Source of the DNA: Girardia tigrina
Taxonomy: Eukaryota
Length of the DNA stretch: 49,625 bases
Reading direction: 5' to 3'
Assembly: GCA_001938485.1 (NCBI GenBank)
Contig: MQRK01246887.1
Coordinates: forward strand, 1 to 49,625
Every line of letters starts with the position of its first letter. The stretch's first letter is position 1. Both the position numbers and the translations under genes were made by a program. The notes beneath the pieces are model-generated. The model had not been told where the DNA came from, made no database searches, and worked only from the letters and a program-made list of their open reading frames with translations. Shown one piece after another: positions 4,061-47,688 of this stretch.

Positions 4061-4793
4061 CCGTAAAAAATTAATTCAAATAATTTTAATTATAAATTTT
4101 GTTTCAAAAAAATTTATAATTTAAATATAAATATAATTTAATAAATATAAAAAAATATAAATATAATAAAAAATATATATAAATATATTTTATTTTCATT
4201 TTCCAAATAAAACTAATTAAAAATAAATAATTTATTTTGTATTTATTTTGATTTTATAAAATTCTATAAAAAATTATAAAAACCAAAGAAAATGATCAAA
4301 ATATTTCTAATTTCCTGATTTTTATTAATTTTTTTTCTGTGATTTTTTTAAACCGAAAAGACGAACACAAATTTCATGTGTAAGTGCAAATAGAAAAAAA
4401 AATTATTTCAAGTAATAAAAAACAGATTTAATAAAATTATTTTTGTCTAAAACTAATAATTGGGGAAATAAAATTTTTTGGATTTTTTTTGTTTTTTCAA
4501 AGGGAATTTCAGTGATTATTTATTGTGATAATGTTGTATCAGGAATAACAGAAAAAACAAATGAGAGAAGAGATAAATGCCATTATTTCCAACCAATAAA
4601 TTTAAAGAATGAAAAAATTTTCATTAATAAGTGATGTTATTTATATTATTAAAAAAATTTTTTCATGCTTCAATCGTATTTATAAGGGCACTTTTAATTG
4701 ACATTCTTTTGTAATGGAAGCTTCTTTAACTAAAAAGACTTACCCCAATAACTAGAACATCAAGTACATCATCAACAAACAAAAAGAAGCGTG

Positions 4794-5846
4794 ATGGATA
4801 AACATAATTTAACGGAAATTCTTTTGAGAATAAAAGCAAAGGAAATGATTGAATATGAAGAGATAATTGATTTTTTCGGTTCAAAAAATAAATCCTCTCC
4901 TTGTTCATATGCAATTTACGCGTGGAATATGACTGGAATGTATAACCTACCTCCACAATGTTGGCCAGAAAGATACCATCTAGTAACTTTGATTATTCTC
5001 TGTATCTCATTGACAATTCTTTTCCTTGGTACCTTTATTGGAAACGCATTAATGATATTCGCATTCCTTTTAGTAAGAAGACTTCGGACTCCGTGTAATA
5101 TGTTGATTATTAATTTAGCCGTAACAGACTTGATGGTTGGAATCATAGTTATTCCGATGGCAAGTATTTATCAGATAAAAGGATATTGGATTTTTAATGA
5201 TTATATTTGTAGTGGATTTATTTTATTTGACGTTCTTCTATGTACTTCGTCTATTTTAAATTTATGTGCTATTTCCGTTGATCGGTATTTTATCATAACT
5301 CAACCGTTTCGATACGCTACTCACAGAACTACTAAAAGAATGTTATTAATGATTCTTATTGTTTGGTTAGCTTCAGCTTTAATAAGTGTTCCACCATTGT
5401 TTGGTTGGAATAATTCTAAGTCCAGATATACATGTGACTATAGTGAAAATCTCGGCTACCAAATATATGCTACATTCATTGCTTTCTATTTACCATTAAT
5501 AGTAATGCTGGTTCTATATGGACGCATTTTCAGGCTTGCTAATTATATTGTTAATCAAGATCAGATTGCTGGTAAACCAGTCAATCTAACAAATAACTCC
5601 CAATTCTCAAAGGATTTTCTTCATAACAATGATCCCCATTCGAAAAATCAAAATAACAATGAAAGTTGTAAATTAAATCTACCAATTATCCGAGTCAATT
5701 TTGCCGAATCCGACGAAGATTCCATTAATAATATGAGAAAAAAAGATAATACATTTAAAAAGAATACCGAAGCAAAAGCCATCAAAACGTTAGGAGTTAT
5801 AATGGGTTGTTTCACAATTTGTTGGCTACCGTTTTTTATTGTCCAA
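4794..5846 (+). CDS. HTR7: Serotonin receptor, 5-HT7-like class A GPCR; large coding exon (TM1-TM6), partial gene
   Basis: Motifs: GN in TM1, NLAVTDL, DVLLCTSSILNLCAISVDRY (D3.32 amine-binding Asp and DRY), WLASALISVPPLFGW, YQIYATFIAFYLPL and EAKAIKTLGVIMGCFTICWLPFF. Phase-0 donor CAA|GTAAAT at 5846/5847; TM7 NPxxY is absent from this exon. The subtype call rests on motif recognition only. Confidence 0.9.
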
Positions 5847-8949: not shown

Positions 8950-10624
8950 CAGTGCTGGAAAAAAGTCTTTTGACAGTGCACTTTTTTGCGAGTTTTAGTG
9001 AAAATATATTACCAAAAACAGTTTTTCAACCCAATTTTTTAATACAACCTTATAAACGTATATTTTATCTATTTTAAGTAAAGAATTAATAGAGTGAGAC
9101 TATTTAAGGATATTATGTGAGCATACATAATGCTTACATAACAATATGTATGCATGGTCATGTATACACATGTGAATATGCTCTTATATATACAGTGCAT
9201 GCGAAATAAGCTGCGTCACTTGTATTGCATATGTTGCATTATCCTTCTTTCTTCCCTCATCAACCAATCAAATCGCGATTTTTTGCTATGTCTGGAAAAC
9301 AAGTTGACCAAGAGATTCGAGGTGCTATTATAGCCTTACACTGCAAAACAAGTTTGTCAACAAGAGAAATTGCAGCTCAATATGGAATTTCCCATTAATC
9401 TGTTGCCAATATAATCAAAAGATATGAATCCGAAGGCAATACTTCAATTAAAACAAGATCAGGCAGGCCTAAAGCAACCACGCCCCGAGTTGATGCATTA
9501 ATAAGAAGGCAAGCAGTGAAAATCCCTTTCTTACCTCTGCCCAAATCAAGCTCAATCTGGTAGTGCAGTGCAGCAATGTTACTACACGTATAATAAGAAA
9601 TCGCCCGTGTAAGAAATTCAAAATGCCAGCCCGTAAAGCTATAAAAAACCGATCATTACAAGTGCAATGAGAAAGAATTGATTACAATTTTGTGAAAAAT
9701 ACACGAATTATACGATTAAACAGTGGAAAAAGGTTATGTTCAGTAAAGAAAGCTCATTCCAAATCAACAATTACCCAAATCAGACAGTTCAAAGACCAGT
9801 TGGCTCATCACCGGTGAACCCAAGGTACACAAAGAAGACTAGCAAGCATCCAGCTTCTGTCATAGTTAGGGGCTGTTTTTTCCCACAATGGCCGAGGGGG
9901 GCTTACACTTCTCAATTCAAACCAAAGACTCAATACTGATGGTTATATCCAGATTTTAGAAGAGAAGTTGGCTCATATTATGTGCATCCATGTTTGTACA
10001 ATTTTCCAGCAAGACAATGCCCCTTGCCATTGTTCAAAAAAGGCGCTGATATGGTTTCAGGACAACAACATTGAGCTGCTTGACCGGCCATCCAACAGCC
10101 CAGACCTGAATACAATTAAACATCTGTGGTCCAACATGAAGAGGAAACTCAGTGAGATTGAAATAACATCTATAAGTCAATTAAAAGAGGAAATAAAACG
10201 AGTATGGTGCCTAGAGACCACTACAGAGGAGTGCCAGAAACTTGTTGAGAGCATGCCACGCCGTATCGAAACTGTTATTCGAAACAAAGGGTACCCAACC
10301 AAATATAGAATTTGATTGGCTTAAACTATGATCTTTTTACCCATTTTATCAATTCATGTTACTATTTTATTCATTTTATGCCATATTATCCTGATAAACA
10401 TTTAGCTTGATATTTTATTGTTTTTAAATAAAAGTGTATCATTCAATGATTTCTCTCTTTTGATTGAAATTAAAAAATCCTGGTATTAATTCTTTACTTA
10501 AAATAGATAAAATATACGTTTACAAGGTTGTATTAAAAAATTGGGTTGAAAAATTGTTTTTAGTAATATATTTTCACTAAAAATCGCAAAAAAGTGCACT
10601 GTCAAACGACTTTTTCCAGCACTG
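8950..10624 (+). mobile_element. Tc1-family DNA transposon, full length, defective transposase (9288-10315)
   Basis: ~140-bp TIRs starting CAGTGCTGGAAAAAAGTC, with TA TSD. Transposase motifs RSGRPK, FQQDNAPCH, PSNSPDLN and LVESMPRRI..VI..KGYPTKY. Stops and frameshifts are present. Confidence 0.96.
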
Positions 10625-11660: not shown

Positions 11661-12956
11661 TTAGGTTGAGGAATAAGTTCCCGCCGTTTTTTGAATTTTT
11701 AATCAATTTAATATTTAAATCAATTTTTTTTGATGTAATGTTATATGTTCTTTGAAAGCTATTGTTTTGCTCTAAAAAATGGTTTATTTTGTTTTTTTAT
11801 TCATATTAATTTTTGTCGATTTTTAGACCATTGAAATAGAGTGTCAAGTCGACAAAAATGACCATTTCCGACACCATCTATTGTTTGCGTATAATCGAGG
11901 CGCCAAAGCCGCAGACACTGCCCGAGAGTTTTGTGCTGTATACTGAGAAGGTGCTATAGCTGATAGAACCGCTCGTGATTGGTTCGCAAAATTTAAAATT
12001 GACAATTTTGACCTCAAGGATGCACCTCGTTCACGACGACCAAATTAATTCGATGAAGAGTGTTTGAACAAACTTTTGCATGAAGACGCGCATCAAACCA
12101 CTCGAGAATTGGCGGAACAAATGGATTGTGATCAAAAAACTGTCGTGAACCATCTGAAATCAATGGGAAAAGTTCAAAAAATGGGAGCTGGGTCCCTCAT
12201 CTTTTGAAGGAAAACAACAAAAACCAGTGATCCACAATTTCGGTGAGTTTGCTTGCCCGTCATCGCTCTACTCACGGTCATAAGCAACAATTTCTTTATC
12301 GAATTGTAACGGGTGATGAAAAATTGTGCCTGCATGTCAACATAAAACAACGCAAAGAATGGCGTAGCCGAGAAGAACATTCGACACCGCGAGCAAAACA
12401 GTATCTTCATCCACGAAAGACAATGCTATGCGTTTGGTGGGGTTGGGAAGGTATTATTCATTATGAATTGCTTCCTCGAAACCAAACAGTGAACGCAGAA
12501 CTTTATGTTCAACAGCTGCATAGACTCAACGCCGCTATAAGACAAAAACATCCGAATGTACAACATGTCGTTATTTTGTAAAACGACAATGCACGTCCTC
12601 GTATTGCCAGAATGACAAAAGAAGCCATTCAAACGCTTGGTTTATAAGTGTTACCGCACCCTCCGTATTCACCTGACTTGGCTCCATCTGATTTTCATCT
12701 TTTCCATTCGCTTTCTAACGCTTTGCGTGGTATTTCGTTCAACAATGATGGAGAACTGCAAGTTTGGTTGGCTGAATTCTTCGAATCAAGACCGGGTGAT
12801 TTCTACCAAAGGGGCATTGAAAAACTCGTTGAACATTGTGAAGAAGTCGTGAACAATGGCGGAGATTATATTTGTGATTAATTTGTAGTAACTTTTTTGT
12901 TAAAAAATAAAATTTTAATTTTTCTAAAAACGGCGGGAACTTATTCCTCAACCCAA
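11661..12956 (+). mobile_element. mariner (DD34D) transposon, full length 1296 bp, defective transposase (~11836-12878)
   Basis: TIRs TTAGGTTGAGGAATAAGTTCCCGCCGTTTTT with TA TSD. Motifs WVPH (frameshifted), IVTGDEK, DNARP and HPPYSPDLAPSDFHLF. The start ATG is mutated to ATA and there are several stops. Confidence 0.97.
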
Positions 12957-26188: not shown

Positions 26189-26417
26189 CCGTAAATTCCG
26201 GACTATAAGCCGCACTTAAAAACATGAAATGAGTCATAATTTAAGAGTTTTGGTTTAAAATCCGTTGCGGTTTATACGTTTTAATAATGTTTTTATTTGT
26301 TTTATAATGTTTATAATGTTTTTTTATATAATGTCATAGCTTATAATGTTTTTTTGGGAAAATCAGGCAATGTGCGGCTTATAATACGGTGCGCGCCTTA
26401 TAGTGCGGAAATTACGG
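26189..26417. mobile_element. pogo/Tigger-type MITE
   Basis: TIR CCGTAAATTCCGGACTATAAG / CTTATAGTGCGGAAATTACGG with TA TSD. Internal TTATAATGTTT repeats. Confidence 0.88.
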
Positions 26418-26424
26418 TAACTTG

Positions 26425-27118
26425 ATTCCCAGACAATTTGGTAATTGACAACTGGGTAATGAGACAATTGTGTTATTGGACAATATATATTCAATATCAA
26501 TTGTTGCTCACAAAATACAGATAATGTTGTTGCGTTGAGTTGTGACTGTTTATCCACAACGCTTAAATCCAAGAATAATCCAAATTTTGATCTCATTTAT
26601 AAATTAGTAAATTAAAAAAAAACAAAAATTATCATTAACAAATTCTTCATCAGCAGTAAACGCTCGGCACAAATAAAATTTTACCATTAATTCAAATCAT
26701 CATCATAAAAAAATTTTCATCTGAAACAAATTATTATCATTAAATAAAATATGTTTCTTTAAAGGAATTTCGTTTTAATAATAAAGCATTTTTCACTATG
26801 AAGTCTTCTATGACCAACAATTTTTTAATATCAATAAAATCTTATCATTTTTCTTAATTTTTTCTATCATCAATAACAAAAAACAATAATACCTTTTTAT
26901 TGATAACCAAATAACTACTGCTCCTACATTATATATAACGATTTCAAAAACAAGTGGACTAAATTAAATTAATAAGAAATAATATTAATGTAAAAAATGA
27001 AGATAAAGAACTGCTGTTTAAATAAGATAAAGAGAAACAATTGATATTCAAAATATATTTTGCCAATTACACAATTGTCCAATTACTTAATAATCCATTA
27101 CCCAATTGTTTGGTCACC
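26425..27118. mobile_element. Long-TIR non-autonomous element (Mutator-like)
   Basis: ~80-90 bp imperfect inverted termini built of ACAATTG.GTAAT repeats (26430-26510 vs 27030-27118). Confidence 0.65.
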
Positions 27119-30540: not shown

Positions 30541-30859
30541 CAATTAGTTCACGAAACGCAATCTTAAATAATTACCCTATTAACTACAAAATATTTTAGG
30601 AAAACTAAATTTTAATGAGTAACACAATTCGTGATTATTGTTCAGAAGTAAGGATTTAATATTTGTAAATTTAGTAAATTTATGTGTGTTAGAATTTAAA
30701 AAATTGAATAAAACAAGTTGAAGCTTGCTTTTTTAAAATTTTGTATTATTTTAGTGCATGATAATTAATGAATGAGTGTTTTTTAAAGAATTAAAATAAA
30801 ATTCCACAATTTGTGCTCGACGGCTTCAGAGAACGTAAATAAGTTATTTTTGGACTATA

Positions 30860-31340
30860 AATTCTGGTTGTCAGTCAATAATGATGATCCGAACTAGCAT
30901 TCGGAGAGTTGATCGGGGAGCCGAGGAAGCCAGCTGTTGGGATCGAGAAATTTCCCAATCGACACCAGGCCAATTCATTAAGGGGGCACTGAGTCTGATA
31001 GAAAATTTCTCGGGATCTGAAATAAACTAAAATGATTATTAAATAAATATAATATTAATTAATTAAAATTAACCCTAATTGATTTTGGACTTTGATCTGA
31101 AATAAAAAATATGATTATTAAAATTAATTGAATAAAAAGCTTACCTAAGTGATTTCACCTTTGATCCTGAAATTAACAAAAACAAATATTATATATGTAA
31201 TTAGAAAACTTACTTGATCTATCTGACCTTTGATCGTTGTTCATCTAAATGAAAATTTTGTTATTTTTATTTGATTAAAACAAAAACTTACTTTATTGAT
31301 TTGGAATTTGTTGTCGATTGATAACGGCAGGGGCTTATAG
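30860..31340 (-). other. Putative spliced micro-exon transcription unit (4 mini-introns) with a long hairpin in the last exon
   Basis: Minus-strand introns: 31245-31291 (GTAAGT..TTTAG), 31167-31213 (GTAAGT..TTTCAG), 31097-31144 (GTAAGC..TTTCAG) and 31017-31073 (GTTAAT..TTTCAG). Internal exons are 31, 22 and 23 nt. Upstream CTATAAG at 31340-31334. Confidence 0.6.
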
Positions 31341-31639
31341 TACCTGTCGAAACTGTTGACACAAAGTCCAGCGATCTCGAAATTTATGTGAAAATTTCAA
31401 AAATCTAATTACTATAAATTCGTTTGAATCTGTTATTTGTTCAGAAAGTTTTTTGTCTAATTGTTGATTACAAATTAATAAATTTTTCTCTCTTCAGTTT
31501 TTGTGAGTTTTTAATTGTAATTTTTTTTGAGGTTGATGGAGTATAGATATAAAATGGACATATTCTAAAATATATTGCTGGGAGCCGATCAGGTGATAGG
31601 TACCGGCAGGTACTCAGTGCCTGCAGTGAGTATTATCGA

Positions 31640-32107
31640 TCAGGCAGGTAATATGAAAAGATCTTGAAATGGAATTGAAGATAGCTGATCAGTTGATAGT
31701 TGCCTGCCGAAAACATTGGGGAAAAGCCCGGTGGAGATAATTTTCAGAAGGAAAATTGACAGACAAAAATGGTATAGTAACAATAGATCACCGTCGGGGG
31801 AGAAAAAGGAATATACGGAAACAACTACATGTCGCTCATTTAATATCGGAGACAAAGTATGGTTGAAGAAGAAGATAAAAACTAAATCGGATGAAAAATG
31901 CGAGGGACCTTATAAAATAGTGAGAAGATTCACGACAGAAGTTATCGATTAGAGGACGAAAATAAAAAACAAATAGTACGAAATGGAGAGAAGATCAAAA
32001 ACTTTAAAGAAAGGGGGAATGTTAGGAATTAATAGTAAACGGAAAATTTTTGAAATAGGCAATCGAAAATAAGTTAAATTAGTTAAATAAATATAATTTT
32101 ATAAAAT
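31640..32107 (+). mobile_element. Gypsy integrase C-terminus, polypurine tract and truncated LTR
   Basis: GKSPVEIIF.R, FNIGDKVW and EGPYKIV motifs, paralogous to 7-393. PPT AAAGAAAGGGGGAA (32006-32019) is followed by TGTTAGG. Confidence 0.85.
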
Positions 32108-32388
32108 ACCGGTTTAACAACAAATAAAACTTTAGTAATTAAAGTCCGCTTAAAGTCCGTTGAGCTTATACGTTTTTATAATGTCTTTATTTGTTTTATA
32201 ATGTTTATGATGTTTTTTTATATAATGTCTTTATAATGTTTTATATATACTTATAATGTTTTTTTTGGGAAAAGCAGGCAATGTGTGGCTTATAATACTG
32301 AAATATAGTGCGGAAATTACTGTAACTAGAATGTTGTTGCATTGAGTTGTGACCGTTAATCCACAACGCTTAGATCCAAGAATAATCA
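32108..32388. mobile_element. Second copy of the pogo-type MITE plus adjacent fragment of the Mutator-like element
   Basis: 32160-32325 matches 26270-26419, and 32329-32388 matches 26523-26580. Confidence 0.75.
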
Positions 32389-34119
32389 TGAATATTCATA
32401 ATATATTTATCATTACTAACTTTAGAAGATATTTCCTTTTTTAATACTGATTTATAATTTTATTCTCTGTACTGAATAAAATTAAGAACCGAATGACGCC
32501 AGAGAAAGCGAATAGTTTTTGTGTAATTAAATAAAATCGATTACGTGACTTGAATTGATTATTTGACTTGAAGAAATTGTACTGAAAATATTCGAATTTG
32601 TTTGTTATTGATCGATCGATTTTATTAAATTTAATTTTAAATCGTATCTCAATTTGAATAATTAATTCTAATCGTTTCTATGATTTCTGATTTTCGCTTG
32701 ACGACAAATTATTCGCAAATAAATAAAATGGCGATAAACAATCGAAATATTAATAGTGAAATATGTTCAATGAGAATAAATAATCAAATAAACGGCACAG
32801 TGTTTCTGTATGATCAGCGAATGTCGGTGTTGGATGAAACTTGATGATTTAAATAGAAAACAAAATACTTTTAGAAAAAATTATTCCAATAAGATTAATT
32901 TTTACAAAGTGAAATGTGAATCAATCACTTCGAAAATCGATACTGAAATGGTTAAAATTATCTGATGATAAATAAATTTATTTTGTTACATTTTTAGGTA
33001 ATGTCCTCTAATAATATTTTTCTTATAAAATCATAATTGAATTTATAAAAGCAACAACTGTTTAAAATTAAAATGGATAAAAAATTATTGCTTTGGGAAT
33101 CTTTCAAATTATATACAACGCATTTTGGAAAATATAATTTTTAAGACCATAAAAGTAAAAATGTGATATTTATTTGTCTGCCGTGTGATTTAGCCCTAAA
33201 AATTTGCTTTGGTTCTGTCAACCGGTTTATTGTTCTGTTGGGCAGGATGTCAGATTTATTTATAATCTGTCTGGAATATATAGCAGTTTTATATTATCAC
33301 ATTTTATATAACTTTAATAATATTTCAAAAAATAATTTCGTTTTATTAAATATAATGATTATTCTAACTAATACAAAAAATGATAAAATACGTGAAAATA
33401 AATTGCTAAAGAAGTCAATTAAGTATTGGTTTAAAAATAAACGTAAAATATTTTTTATATAAATAATAATATAATATTCAGATCAAGCATTCATAAAACT
33501 CTTGAGATGACAAAACTGGTTTTTAAATAATAAATAAATAATTTCCTTTATTTGATCAGAAATATTATAAAAAATCTTATATAATTTTGGACTTGTACAT
33601 GTTGGAAAATTATAACCATTTTACAGCTTCGATTAAATTTAATTGCTAATTCGCCGACCTTGAGGCTTATTAGAGTGAAAAATAAATTAATTGTTAAAAT
33701 AATAAAATTGGTTGATAAATTACTTCGACAGTTTTTTTTCGATTTTCTTGTTGTGGTTAAAAAAGTTGTTAATTGTTTAAATGAATTCATGTAAAGCGGA
33801 ATCACCGCACAAAATTCTAAAACTCAATAAACAATTAAATCAGATTATCTTGGTCTGTATTTTAACCAATTTTATCGGGATGTCAGTACCGAACGTTATT
33901 TATAACGTTAACGTAAAATCCGAATTTAATTGTGTCTCAATGATGAATTATGTGGAACAAACCCGACGACGTAGTAAAAAAAATCAATGAAGCTAATAAT
34001 GAAAGCAAAAATTTGGTTATTCAGACCATTATATCCATTATATTGGGAACATGAAATGGCCCTCATTAGGGACTCAATAAATGATTGGACGACAAAAATC
34101 TATTGGTCGGAAAATCCGG

Positions 34120-35519: not shown

Positions 35520-36420
35520 CAGTAGTGACGGTATGCGGGCAAAAAATTGGGGGCCTAAAGACTTATACATAACGATATTTATTAAATGTCGATAGTAACC
35601 AAATTTTTGCAACAATTATTTCGTGTTTTTGTCAATATTGGCCGTCGATATATATCATAACACACGTGTTTGAAACAAACGACATACATATATTTCAAAT
35701 AATTTAAACATTTTTCCTTAACTAAATGGTAAAATTAAATTTCAACGTCTATCTGCAAATTTATTTCAGTAATGTTTTGCTGCACATGATAAATCAGTCT
35801 CCTTGGCATGATTTGATTCAACCACAATAACTATTAAATCTGAAAGTCGATCTTGTGTCATAACTGTACAAAGGTGATTCTTCACTAATTTTAGTGCAGA
35901 GAAAGACCATTCACAGGAAGATGAGGTGACCGGGAATGCAAGCAATAGACGATAAAGTGTAACCATATGGGGATAGGTTGCGGTAAGGCCACGATTAACC
36001 ATGTGGAGGAATACAGAATAGATATCACCATTTTTAAATATCTCACGTGAGAACAATCGATACTCAATCCGAGCATTGGAAGCATTCACGTTCTCTCGGT
36101 AAAAGAAAAACAAAGTTTCTAGTTTGTCTAGATGAGATATGTTGGGAGAACATAAGCATGCAATGCATGACAACAAAGGATGGACATTTGGATTGAAGGT
36201 CAACAGTTCTATAGAAAAAGTAACATCAGTATCTCTCTCGACCTGTGAGTAACATCTGATGTGAGTAATAAATAGATACAAAAAATATATTATATAATAT
36301 TGATATTTATTACATTACCTGTGAATTACATTGATCATCAATGAGCTTGGTTATTTTTCGTTACCGTAGCTCCTCATATTGAAGGTCGATGGCGTTAGCA
36401 ATTTGTCGATGTCAGATTAA
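35520..36420 (-). mobile_element. hAT transposon 3' part (ZMYM1-like transposase, hATC dimerisation domain) with an intron at 36243-36318
   Basis: TYPHMVTLYRLLLAFPVTSSSCEWSFSALKLVKNHLCTVMTQDRLSDL is the hATC motif. GTAATG...CACAG intron; CAGTAGTG terminus at 35520. Confidence 0.88.
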
Positions 36421-41608: not shown

Positions 41609-43243
41609 CCGTATTTGTCGGATTATAAACAGCGGCTTATATAAAAAAAATAATATAAATATAAAAGTAAAAACATCAATATATAAAAACAAAACCAATA
41701 ATTTTATTTTAAGATTATTCGATTTCCTCGAATCCATCAAAATCTTCATCATCTATTATTTGAAATGTTTCGAAAATGTGCAAAAATTCCGTTTGGATTT
41801 CTTGTAAATCTTTATCCTCACTTCCAGTTTCAATTTCTGAATCATAACCACCTTCGATATTTTCATCATAAGTTTGAATCTGCTTTCTTAAATCCATTTT
41901 TAATACACTGTGGTGTAACATCTTCCCAGCTTTTAACAATCCAATCGCATATTTCTGAATATGTCGCTCTTTTGATTTTCCCCGTTTTGTTGTAAATGTG
42001 ACAACCATTGCTAATCCAATTTTCCCAATATATTTTTAGCTTAGATTTGAACGATTTGTAAACTGATAGATCAAGTGGTTGAATGCTTTTAGTGAGGCCA
42101 CCAGGGATCACTGCAAGTTCAGAATATTTTTTTACTTCATTTTCAACTTCCTCAGTAAGATGACATCTAGTAGAATAGTATATTAAAAGTGATTTTGGCT
42201 TAAAAAAGGAATCATTTCTTTTTATCCAAATTTTTTGTATCCATTTTTTCATTATTTCACTATTTGACCATCCATTTTTATTGACTTCAACAATAATTCA
42301 TTTTGGAAAATTTTCTTTGGGCATTGTTAGTCTTTTAAATATCACCATTGGTTTACATCTTTTTCCATCGGCAGTTACAATTAATATAACTGTAAAATTA
42401 TATTTTTCATTTCCGGTTGTTTTGATCAGAATATCTTATTTTCCGTTTTCATCAACTGTCCTTGTATCTGGAATATCGAAACTAACAGAAACTTCATCCA
42501 TATTCCCAAGATTCTTCAAATCGATAACTCTCTTTTTATCTTTAATAAAAAGTAAAAATGATTATATTTTTTCTTCCCAATCAGCTGGTAACGATTGTCC
42601 AACTGAAATTACTGCTGTCATGCTTAAATTATTTCTTTTCATAAATCTTGTGCACTAACTATTCGTTCCTTTAAAATTTTCTATATTAAAATCATATTTT
42701 GCCATTTTTTTCGCTGTTAATCTAATATCAATTGTAGAAACTTTAAACGCTTTCTCCCTTTTCTCAATTACATACTTTTTAACGGCCTTTTCTAAATCGG
42801 GCCAAAGTGCAAATCCCCCTCTTTTTGCTTTCTTTTTTGTCGGCATTACGTTTAAAAGATTTTTCGATTTTCTCCAATGCAGAATGTTTTTTTTTCATTT
42901 AATTTGAATTCTCTTTCTGCTTCTCTGTTACCATGTTTTTCAGCATAAGCAATAATTTCCAATTTTCTTTCGACCGTAAAGGATCTTCTTGTTTTCTTCA
43001 TTTCAACGTGGATTTTACATTCAAATTATTTTAATAAAACAAAAATAATTAAAGTCAAAATTAAAATAATATTAATTTAAATTTAATGATTTCTCTATTT
43101 GCATAATTTAAAATAAGTTTTTGATTAAAAATTTAAAGTCACAAAAATATGCGACTTGTACGCTGTTGAATTTAATTTTCAAAATTTAAAAAAAATGGGA
43201 TGCGACTGATATGCGAGTGCGACTTATAGTCCGATAAATACGG
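41609..43243 (-). mobile_element. pogo (POGK-like) transposon with defective transposase (43001-41715)
   Basis: TIR CCGTATTT.TCGGA.TATAA. BrkDBD-like start MKKTRRSFTVERKLEII, CENP-B HTH, GNMDE, and VIPGGLTKSIQPLDLSV.KSFK (DDE_1). Frameshifts and stops are present. Confidence 0.95.
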
Positions 43244-46792: not shown

Positions 46793-47688
46793 ATGACAAA
46801 CATTTCTGAATATTCTAAGGTTGAAGATATTGGTGAAGGTATATTTGGAATGGTTTACAAAGCTTTTCATCAAGAAACAAATATGATTTACACAATCAAA
46901 GAAATATAAAATGACGATTGTTTTGATATTTCAACTATAAGAGAAATACAAATTCTGAAATCTTTGGATCACAAAAATATTGTCAAGGTAAAAGATGTTG
47001 ATGAAAGGTATGATGATGAAGGATTTTACACACCTTTTTTATATTGGAATTATGTGATCAGACTCTTTTACGATGGATATCTCCAAAATCGACTTCTCCT
47101 CATTCTTATTCAATAATGAAACAATCTTTGACAGCACTTAATTACATGCATGAAAATAATTTTATCCATCGAGATTTGAAACCAGACAATATTATAAAAG
47201 ACAAATTAGATGTAATGAAAATTGCAGACTTTAGATGTGCAAGAATAATAAAGGATTGTAAAGTTAAGAAAATAGCACAATATTCCCCCGATACTGGAAC
47301 GATGTGGTATTATCCTCCTGAAATATTGCTACACGACGAATTTTACGACGAATCTGTCGATATTTGGAGCATGGAATACATTTTTATAGAGATTCTTGGT
47401 AAAGATGTTCTATTTCCAATAGAAAATGAAAATTAAGCAAATTTAATTTCAAAAATGTGTGGAAGTATAAATGAAGATTGGTCACAAGGATATGAAATAA
47501 TGGAAAATTATAAAATTTATACAAAGTCAATGAACACTATTTTAAAAGATTATTTAGATGAAGCCACTGAAAATTCTAACATAACATCATTTCTTACTCA
47601 AATGATTTCTTTAAAAATTTCAAAAAGACCATCTGCAAAATGACTTTTAAATGAACATTTTTTTAATGTACACAATATTTTATTGTAA
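46793..47688 (+). pseudogene. Intronless CDK-like (CMGC) protein kinase pseudogene
   Basis: IGEGIFGMVYKA, ISTIREIQILKSLDHKNIV (PSTAIRE-like), IHRDLKPDNI, KIADFR (DFG lost), GTMWYYPPEILL, VDIWS and KRPSA. In-frame stops at ~46908, 47434 and 47641, and a frameshift at ~47040. Confidence 0.9.

Follow-up and report, generated by a model that had tools for sequence, protein, structure and literature searches.

The stretch of DNA analysed here (the window) covers 49,625 nt of a Girardia tigrina contig (MQRK01246887.1). An open reading frame at 4791 encodes a product 73% identical to Schmidtea GCR023, and positions 4791-5846 make up the first coding exon of a 5-HT7-like receptor, ending after TM6. 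As this exon ends at ~5846 and the last exon of the receptor is found on five other small contigs, the intron must be longer than 43 kb. A fragment of a long terminal repeat (LTR) most likely lies within this long intron and carries, on the minus strand, a run of short intron-like tracts (Table 1). The preliminary description of the locus had called the array antisense to the serotonin receptor gene. As a position, ~25 kb into the intron, this stands, but no further link was found; a functional connection of the LTR to the receptor was considered and rejected on the exon positions given above, the LTR being simply intronic. The window copy is best read as a truncated relic that is incidental in the receptor intron. 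The window also contains DNA transposon remnants (DDE_3, mariner-type, hAT and DDE_1 by Pfam, at 9968-10315, 12243-12581, 35766-36281 and 41866-42252), as well as two gypsy-type integrase tails (7-400 and 31708-32400), each with a purine tract and then the start of an LTR behind it; a section of the LTR after the second tail is repeated at 26255-26580. A CDK-like kinase frame on the plus strand (46800-47436) appears broken and without introns, and may be a retrocopy or the cargo of an element.

The array consists of four adjoining GT-AG tracts separating exons of 31, 22 and 23 nt. In the window copy, the donors of tracts 1-4 read GTAAGT, GTAAGT, GTAAGC and GTTAAT, the last being GTTAGT in 28 of 29 other copies, and the acceptors are TTTAG in one tract and TTTCAG in three. 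Under a simple donor-acceptor rule, no other chain on either strand of the window has more than one member. When the array region was dinucleotide-shuffled 20,000 times, the maximum was a chain of 2 (58 times) and chains of 3 or 4 never appeared, a figure that overstates independence because the array units are tandem duplicates and not four independent events. The coordinates, the unique chain and the shuffles confirm the earlier account of four back-to-back AT-rich introns of 47, 47, 48 and 57 nt with GTAAG donors in three and TTT(C)AG acceptors, and the spacing of the units (69-78 nt) is consistent with its proposal that an exon+intron unit was duplicated in tandem. Planarian short introns have a length peak at 45-85 nt (PMC13594981), within which all four tracts fall. 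With their GT-AG ends, donor consensus, pyrimidine tract and a length at the host peak, the tracts have the features of U2-type short introns.

Table 1. Features of the LTR fragment and its surroundings in the window (subfamilies A and B of the LTR are described in the text)
Feature	Position	Strand	Remark
Different repeat, insertion target of the LTR	30806..30934	.	supplies the end of the 64-aa frame
5' (U3-side) 773 nt of the ~1.2-1.5 kb LTR	30935..31707	+	start TGTTGGG; 3' part lost in the window copy
Last exon, LTR part, 82 nt	30935..31016	-	nearly all hairpin; no AATAAA
Intron-like tract 4, 57 nt	31017..31073	-	GTTAGT donor in most copies
Exon 4, 23 nt	31074..31096	-	
Intron-like tract 3, 48 nt	31097..31144	-	
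Exon 3, 22 nt	31145..31166	-	23 nt in subfamily B
Intron-like tract 2, 47 nt	31167..31213	-	one contig joint across tract 2
Exon 2, 31 nt	31214..31244	-	ATG lost in subfamily B
Intron-like tract 1, 47 nt	31245..31291	-	
CTATAAG TATA-like box (31340-31334) and presumed first exon to the first donor	31292..31340	-	0/30 differences, subfamily A vs B
CTCCATCAACCTC 13-nt motif	31533..31545	-	inverted twin ~290-390 nt further into full LTRs (LTR position ~880-990)
~103-nt internal LTR repeat, palindromic GGCAGG...CCTGCC core	31583..31707	.	2-4 copies per LTR
Integrase tail (gypsy-type, unrelated) with polypurine tract, joined to the truncated LTR	31708..32019	+	own LTR starts at 32020

The array lies in a retrotransposon LTR of hundreds of copies, a setting that was missed in the first reading. 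A genome search with positions 30860-31400 returned 929 first-look candidates, and the 40 that were scored are 93-96% identical. All copies share a sharp edge at window position 30935, beyond which the flanks are unrelated from one insertion to another. Full copies form units of 1.2-1.5 kb bounded by TGTTGGG...CCCAACA (TG...CA termini with a short inverted repeat), and at least nine of them (e.g. L003, L006, L015, L023, L026, L037, L039, L040 and L043) are flanked by perfect 4-bp target duplications, the truncated window copy being outside this test. The longer loci with these termini and target duplications are solo LTRs. In some copies, an 18-nt primer-binding site starts 8-9 nt beyond the LTR end (13 matches versus 0 for the control) and is followed by an internal region common to the copies (48 matches). 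This site is complementary over its 18 nt to the 3' end of a host tRNA, which we take to be tRNA-Pro, and the matching tRNA pattern (T-loop/acceptor stem) was found 18 times, in tandem, in the genome. The spacer between LTR end and primer site, TATTATTTT, is unusually long at 8-9 nt in L047-L058. The termini, target duplications and primer site establish the sequence as an LTR, whereas a DNA transposon or MITE, a DIRS element and a Penelope element were ruled out by the tRNA primer site, the target duplication and the direct LTR-internal junction. As to the class of the element, the 4-bp target duplication is only suggestive of Ty3/gypsy. In the window, the LTR copy runs at 31707-31709 into the tail of an integrase that belongs to another gypsy-type element (loose ends at 31709).

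Because the primer site follows the far LTR end, the element sense corresponds to the plus strand of the window, which places the array at the U3 end (LTR positions ~80-360) and in antisense. Splicing of the genomic RNA therefore cannot remove the array introns, and being antisense to that RNA, introns here would survive reverse transcription and be copied into every LTR. Penelope-like elements are said, in work by Arkhipova from 2003, likewise to keep introns through transposition; the planarian element differs in its true LTR termini, target duplication and tRNA primer site, and its intron retention would be explained by the antisense orientation.

Within 1.5 kb of internal sequence, no gag/pol linkable to this LTR and no antisense ORF of the family were located, and a 94-aa stop-free piece of it gave no matches in a protein search. 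Three purine patterns, searched for a polypurine tract before the 3' LTR, gave no shared 3' junction, and a metagenome pattern scan gave no match. In L055/L056, the first 1.2 kb after the primer site form a long internal leader with ~60-nt tandem repeats, in which a pyrimidine tract resembling a sense-strand acceptor precedes the start of a broken Asn/Lys-rich frame, itself without database matches. Most copies contain a stop-free stretch of ~122 codons on the antisense strand, from about +140 to +510. A related LTR family, ~70% identical at the LTR end and with the same primer site, is represented by L053 and L054; its LTR is longer and has the same palindromic motif, and its U3 end falls outside the loci examined. 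Finally, one copy of the LTR studied here (L035:3957-9661) has nested in it a gypsy element of 4.4 kb whose pol stretch spans 845 codons.

We compared the splice signals among 30 young copies with a mean identity of 94%. The share of variable cells is 2.1% for GT, 3.3% for AG, 2.4% for exons and 1.6% for interiors, and all 16 splice-site bases are kept in 18 of the 30 copies. On the test put forward in the preliminary description, GT/AG against flanks among copies, the dinucleotides do vary like their flanks; however, young inserted copies decay neutrally, so the variation among them is not diagnostic of function. Precise deletion of an intron was seen in none of 33 aligned copies.

The diverged units and subfamilies are more informative about the replicating lineage. 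In subfamily B (L048, L050 and L056), introns 1 and 2 differ across their interior and in length (46 and 53 nt) from those of the window copy, yet they retain GTAAGT and TTTCAG. Across the seven distinct introns, interior identity between units or subfamilies is 51-74%, compared with 50-65% for shuffles, with one orthologous pair (95%) as the exception, while donors and acceptors are kept and intron lengths stay at 46-57 nt. A genome-wide donor-acceptor-donor pattern found 212 intact units versus 0 for the control. Their interiors are of several types and their exons 21-31 nt long; as this pattern presupposes splice sites, it shows diversity and not conservation. Since ends and lengths persist while interiors drift to near shuffle level, the sequences point to probable selection for splicing on the replicating lineage of the LTR. 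Unit turnover by recombination could alternatively have carried the splice motifs along. The earlier suggestion of a spliced non-coding or leader RNA is compatible with this persistence of splice signals between units and subfamilies, with splicing taken as putative.

The array itself is non-coding by its sequence. The peptide products proposed earlier, 24 aa with all exons and 64 aa in a skipped form, were both reproduced in length, but the frame-switching micro-exon gene built on them is contradicted by loss of the start codon, variable exon lengths and dependence on the flanks. The ATG of exon 2 is present in 29 of 30 subfamily-A copies and is ATC in subfamily B, exon 3 has 22 or 23 nt depending on the subfamily, and the products of 64 and 58 aa depend on 139-143 nt of last-exon sequence, to which the LTR contributes just 82 nt and private flank the remainder. 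An ATG in the hairpin loop of the last exon, which would open a frame leading out of the LTR, was rejected because a change creating a stop in that frame is common to 11 of 30 copies. Schistosome micro-exon genes (MEGs) have mostly symmetric exons, signal peptides and a conserved frame. The planarian array resembles them as a run of very short exons in a flatworm, but it has no signal peptide, its exons are not symmetric, neither start nor frame is conserved and it sits inside an LTR.

The last exon opens with a ~76-nt hairpin on the minus strand (31017-30941) with a ~30-bp stem and a 13-nt loop. Its folding energy is -29.3 kcal/mol, with a z score of -4.45 on the antisense strand versus -0.85 on the sense strand, and most copies fold alike. 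In size and stem (stable, 60-80 nt, long-stemmed) it matches a microRNA precursor. Paired columns are as variable as unpaired ones among the 30 young copies. In two diverged variants (C20812 and C120301), both arms have changed with pairing retained, as read by eye. The pattern running from the acceptor to the LTR edge at fixed distance matched 308 times versus 34 for the control, i.e. ~270 places above control. The last exon contains no AATAAA, and a transcript would therefore continue beyond the LTR edge.

Two motifs may bear on transcription. The CTATAAG TATA-like box of the preliminary description is indeed present at 31340-31334, but it is one copy of a ~48-nt motif that recurs within the LTR, with 2-4 more copies further in, as CTATGAG/CTATGAA, in the 103-nt internal repeats. 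The 13-nt motif and its inverted twin flank these repeats in opposite orientations, a possible bidirectional promoter layout judging from the motifs. Contigs of four sequencing runs were also examined, three of the runs being only guessed to be RNA and from related material; the runs contain 4-16% of the words. Several contigs read through the introns without splicing, which DNA or sense genomic RNA would also do. One contig of run X3, guessed as RNA (depth 3.65), joins the end of exon 2 to an exon-start-like piece with the intron absent, which is compatible, and no more than that, with splicing of a variant copy.

Starting from the LTR identity, the orientation and position of the array, the persisting splice signals and intron lengths and the hairpin, we consider it probable (roughly 0.6) that the array belongs to an antisense unit of RNA polymerase II type in the U3 end of a gypsy-type LTR retroelement, yielding a non-coding leader that is spliced and carries a hairpin. 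A promoter within the LTR would fire backwards, and four short introns, made by tandem duplication, would be removed by splicing. The product would be a ~190-nt non-coding leader with its hairpin end at the LTR edge, continuing beyond the LTR. A transcript starting in a 3' LTR would enter the 3' internal region of the element itself, as an antisense cargo mRNA or a regulatory antisense RNA, and one starting in a 5' or solo LTR would enter host flank. The likely job of the introns would be to license expression of the antisense RNA, by splicing-coupled elongation, stability and export as known in general. For the role of the RNA, we prefer an antisense cargo mRNA leader or a regulatory antisense RNA over a small-RNA precursor.

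That last option amounts to an explanation of its own, in which the same antisense spliced unit exists for the sake of the hairpin, as a retroelement-encoded microRNA or small-RNA precursor. In its favour, the hairpin has the size of a pre-miRNA, begins right at the last acceptor and takes its best fold on the antisense strand, with apparent covariation in diverged subfamilies, and LTR-encoded miRNAs have a precedent in foamy viruses (PMC3993851). However, an Rfam scan of three loci matched no family, and both arms differ by eye between subfamilies, so that there is no fixed seed. The strand preference is also modest, as just 22 of 30 copies have the lower energy on the antisense strand (means -25.5 versus -23.7 kcal/mol), and as DNA both strands fold alike. 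We therefore see this purpose as unlikely, although it is the strongest of the competing accounts. Less probable again is a minisatellite or enhancer repeat in U3 that undergoes no splicing, its splice-like motifs being one duplicated chance unit or protein-binding sites on DNA or sense RNA (the reverse of GTAAGT being ACTTAC). The tandem origin of the units, the occurrence of U3 repeats in many LTRs, the lack of a selection signal among young copies and the unspliced contigs all fit such a repeat, but donor and acceptor persist in the right order, on the right strand and at 46-57 nt spacing, while interiors randomise and exon lengths vary.

The array could also be the relic of a host gene fragment that was captured in antisense with its intron, then amplified, and is now functionless. 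Antisense capture would preserve introns, yet splice signals that outlast interior divergence imply continuing selection and a host source was not identified, which makes such a relic improbable. Least credible, to the point of being very improbable, is a host gene, whether it encodes a MEG-like or frame-switching protein or acts on the serotonin receptor as a natural antisense regulator. The exon-2 ATG of subfamily A and the position inside a receptor intron speak for it; against it, the LTR copies are dispersed and number in the hundreds, subfamily B has lost the ATG and changed the frame, the long products rely on private flank and the nearest receptor exon is 25 kb away. A host gene or MEG was rejected on the repeat copy number and the lack of a conserved frame, and the array is a module of a retrotransposon LTR instead of a micro-exon gene of the host.

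LTRs are known to be transcribed in antisense, whereas for a spliceosomal mini-intron array maintained inside an LTR we found no description in the full-text literature, whose coverage leaves out most subscription papers. In the deltaretroviruses, BLV AS1/AS2 and HTLV-1 HBZ are spliced, partly non-coding antisense RNAs that start in the 3' LTR and read into the element (PMC4855707). The planarian unit, the expression of which is predicted, shares the layout of an antisense spliced RNA running from the LTR into the element, but the viral RNAs have one splice from an LTR exon to an internal exon, compared with four 46-57 nt introns and 21-31 nt exons wholly within U3 in the LTR of an invertebrate retrotransposon. 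Maize Grande gene23, RIRE2, Retand, micropia and IAP likewise carry antisense promoters and RNAs, coding or non-coding, as units of an LTR element (PMC7264820); that review mentions introns 0 times, in contrast to the four intron-like tracts here. The microRNA cassettes of foamy-virus LTRs also encode hairpin RNA in U3 (PMC3993851), but they rely on RNA polymerase III for transcription, are unspliced and are proven by small-RNA data, whereas the planarian hairpin is antisense and downstream of putative spliceosomal introns, with a predicted role. Burro/GYPSM1, a planarian gypsy-like element, shares the host group, the high copy number and the LTR class, and no antisense or intron feature is described in its paper (PMC6431247). 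As gag/pol linked to our LTR was not found, the element is given no family assignment. It would work like the BLV/HTLV-1 and Grande/micropia/IAP antisense units, with a hairpin that recalls foamy-virus LTR microRNAs, and it is a member of none of these three.

A wider generalization is possible, and we offer it tentatively: the U3 of planarian LTR retroelements may be a purpose-built antisense cassette of promoter, tandem mini-introns and hairpin that, acting from the 3' LTR, drives an antisense cargo gene or a small RNA encoded by the retroelement, the solo LTRs remaining as hundreds of spliced promoters that face outward. In practical terms, such LTRs will be miscalled in their hundreds as micro-exon genes or lncRNAs in planarian annotation. 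Should the unit be spliced, the retroelement would give its own antisense RNA a host-like exon-intron structure, and this would provide a testable route to antisense cargo expression or self-regulation in animals whose somatic piRNA control is strong (PMC8532177).
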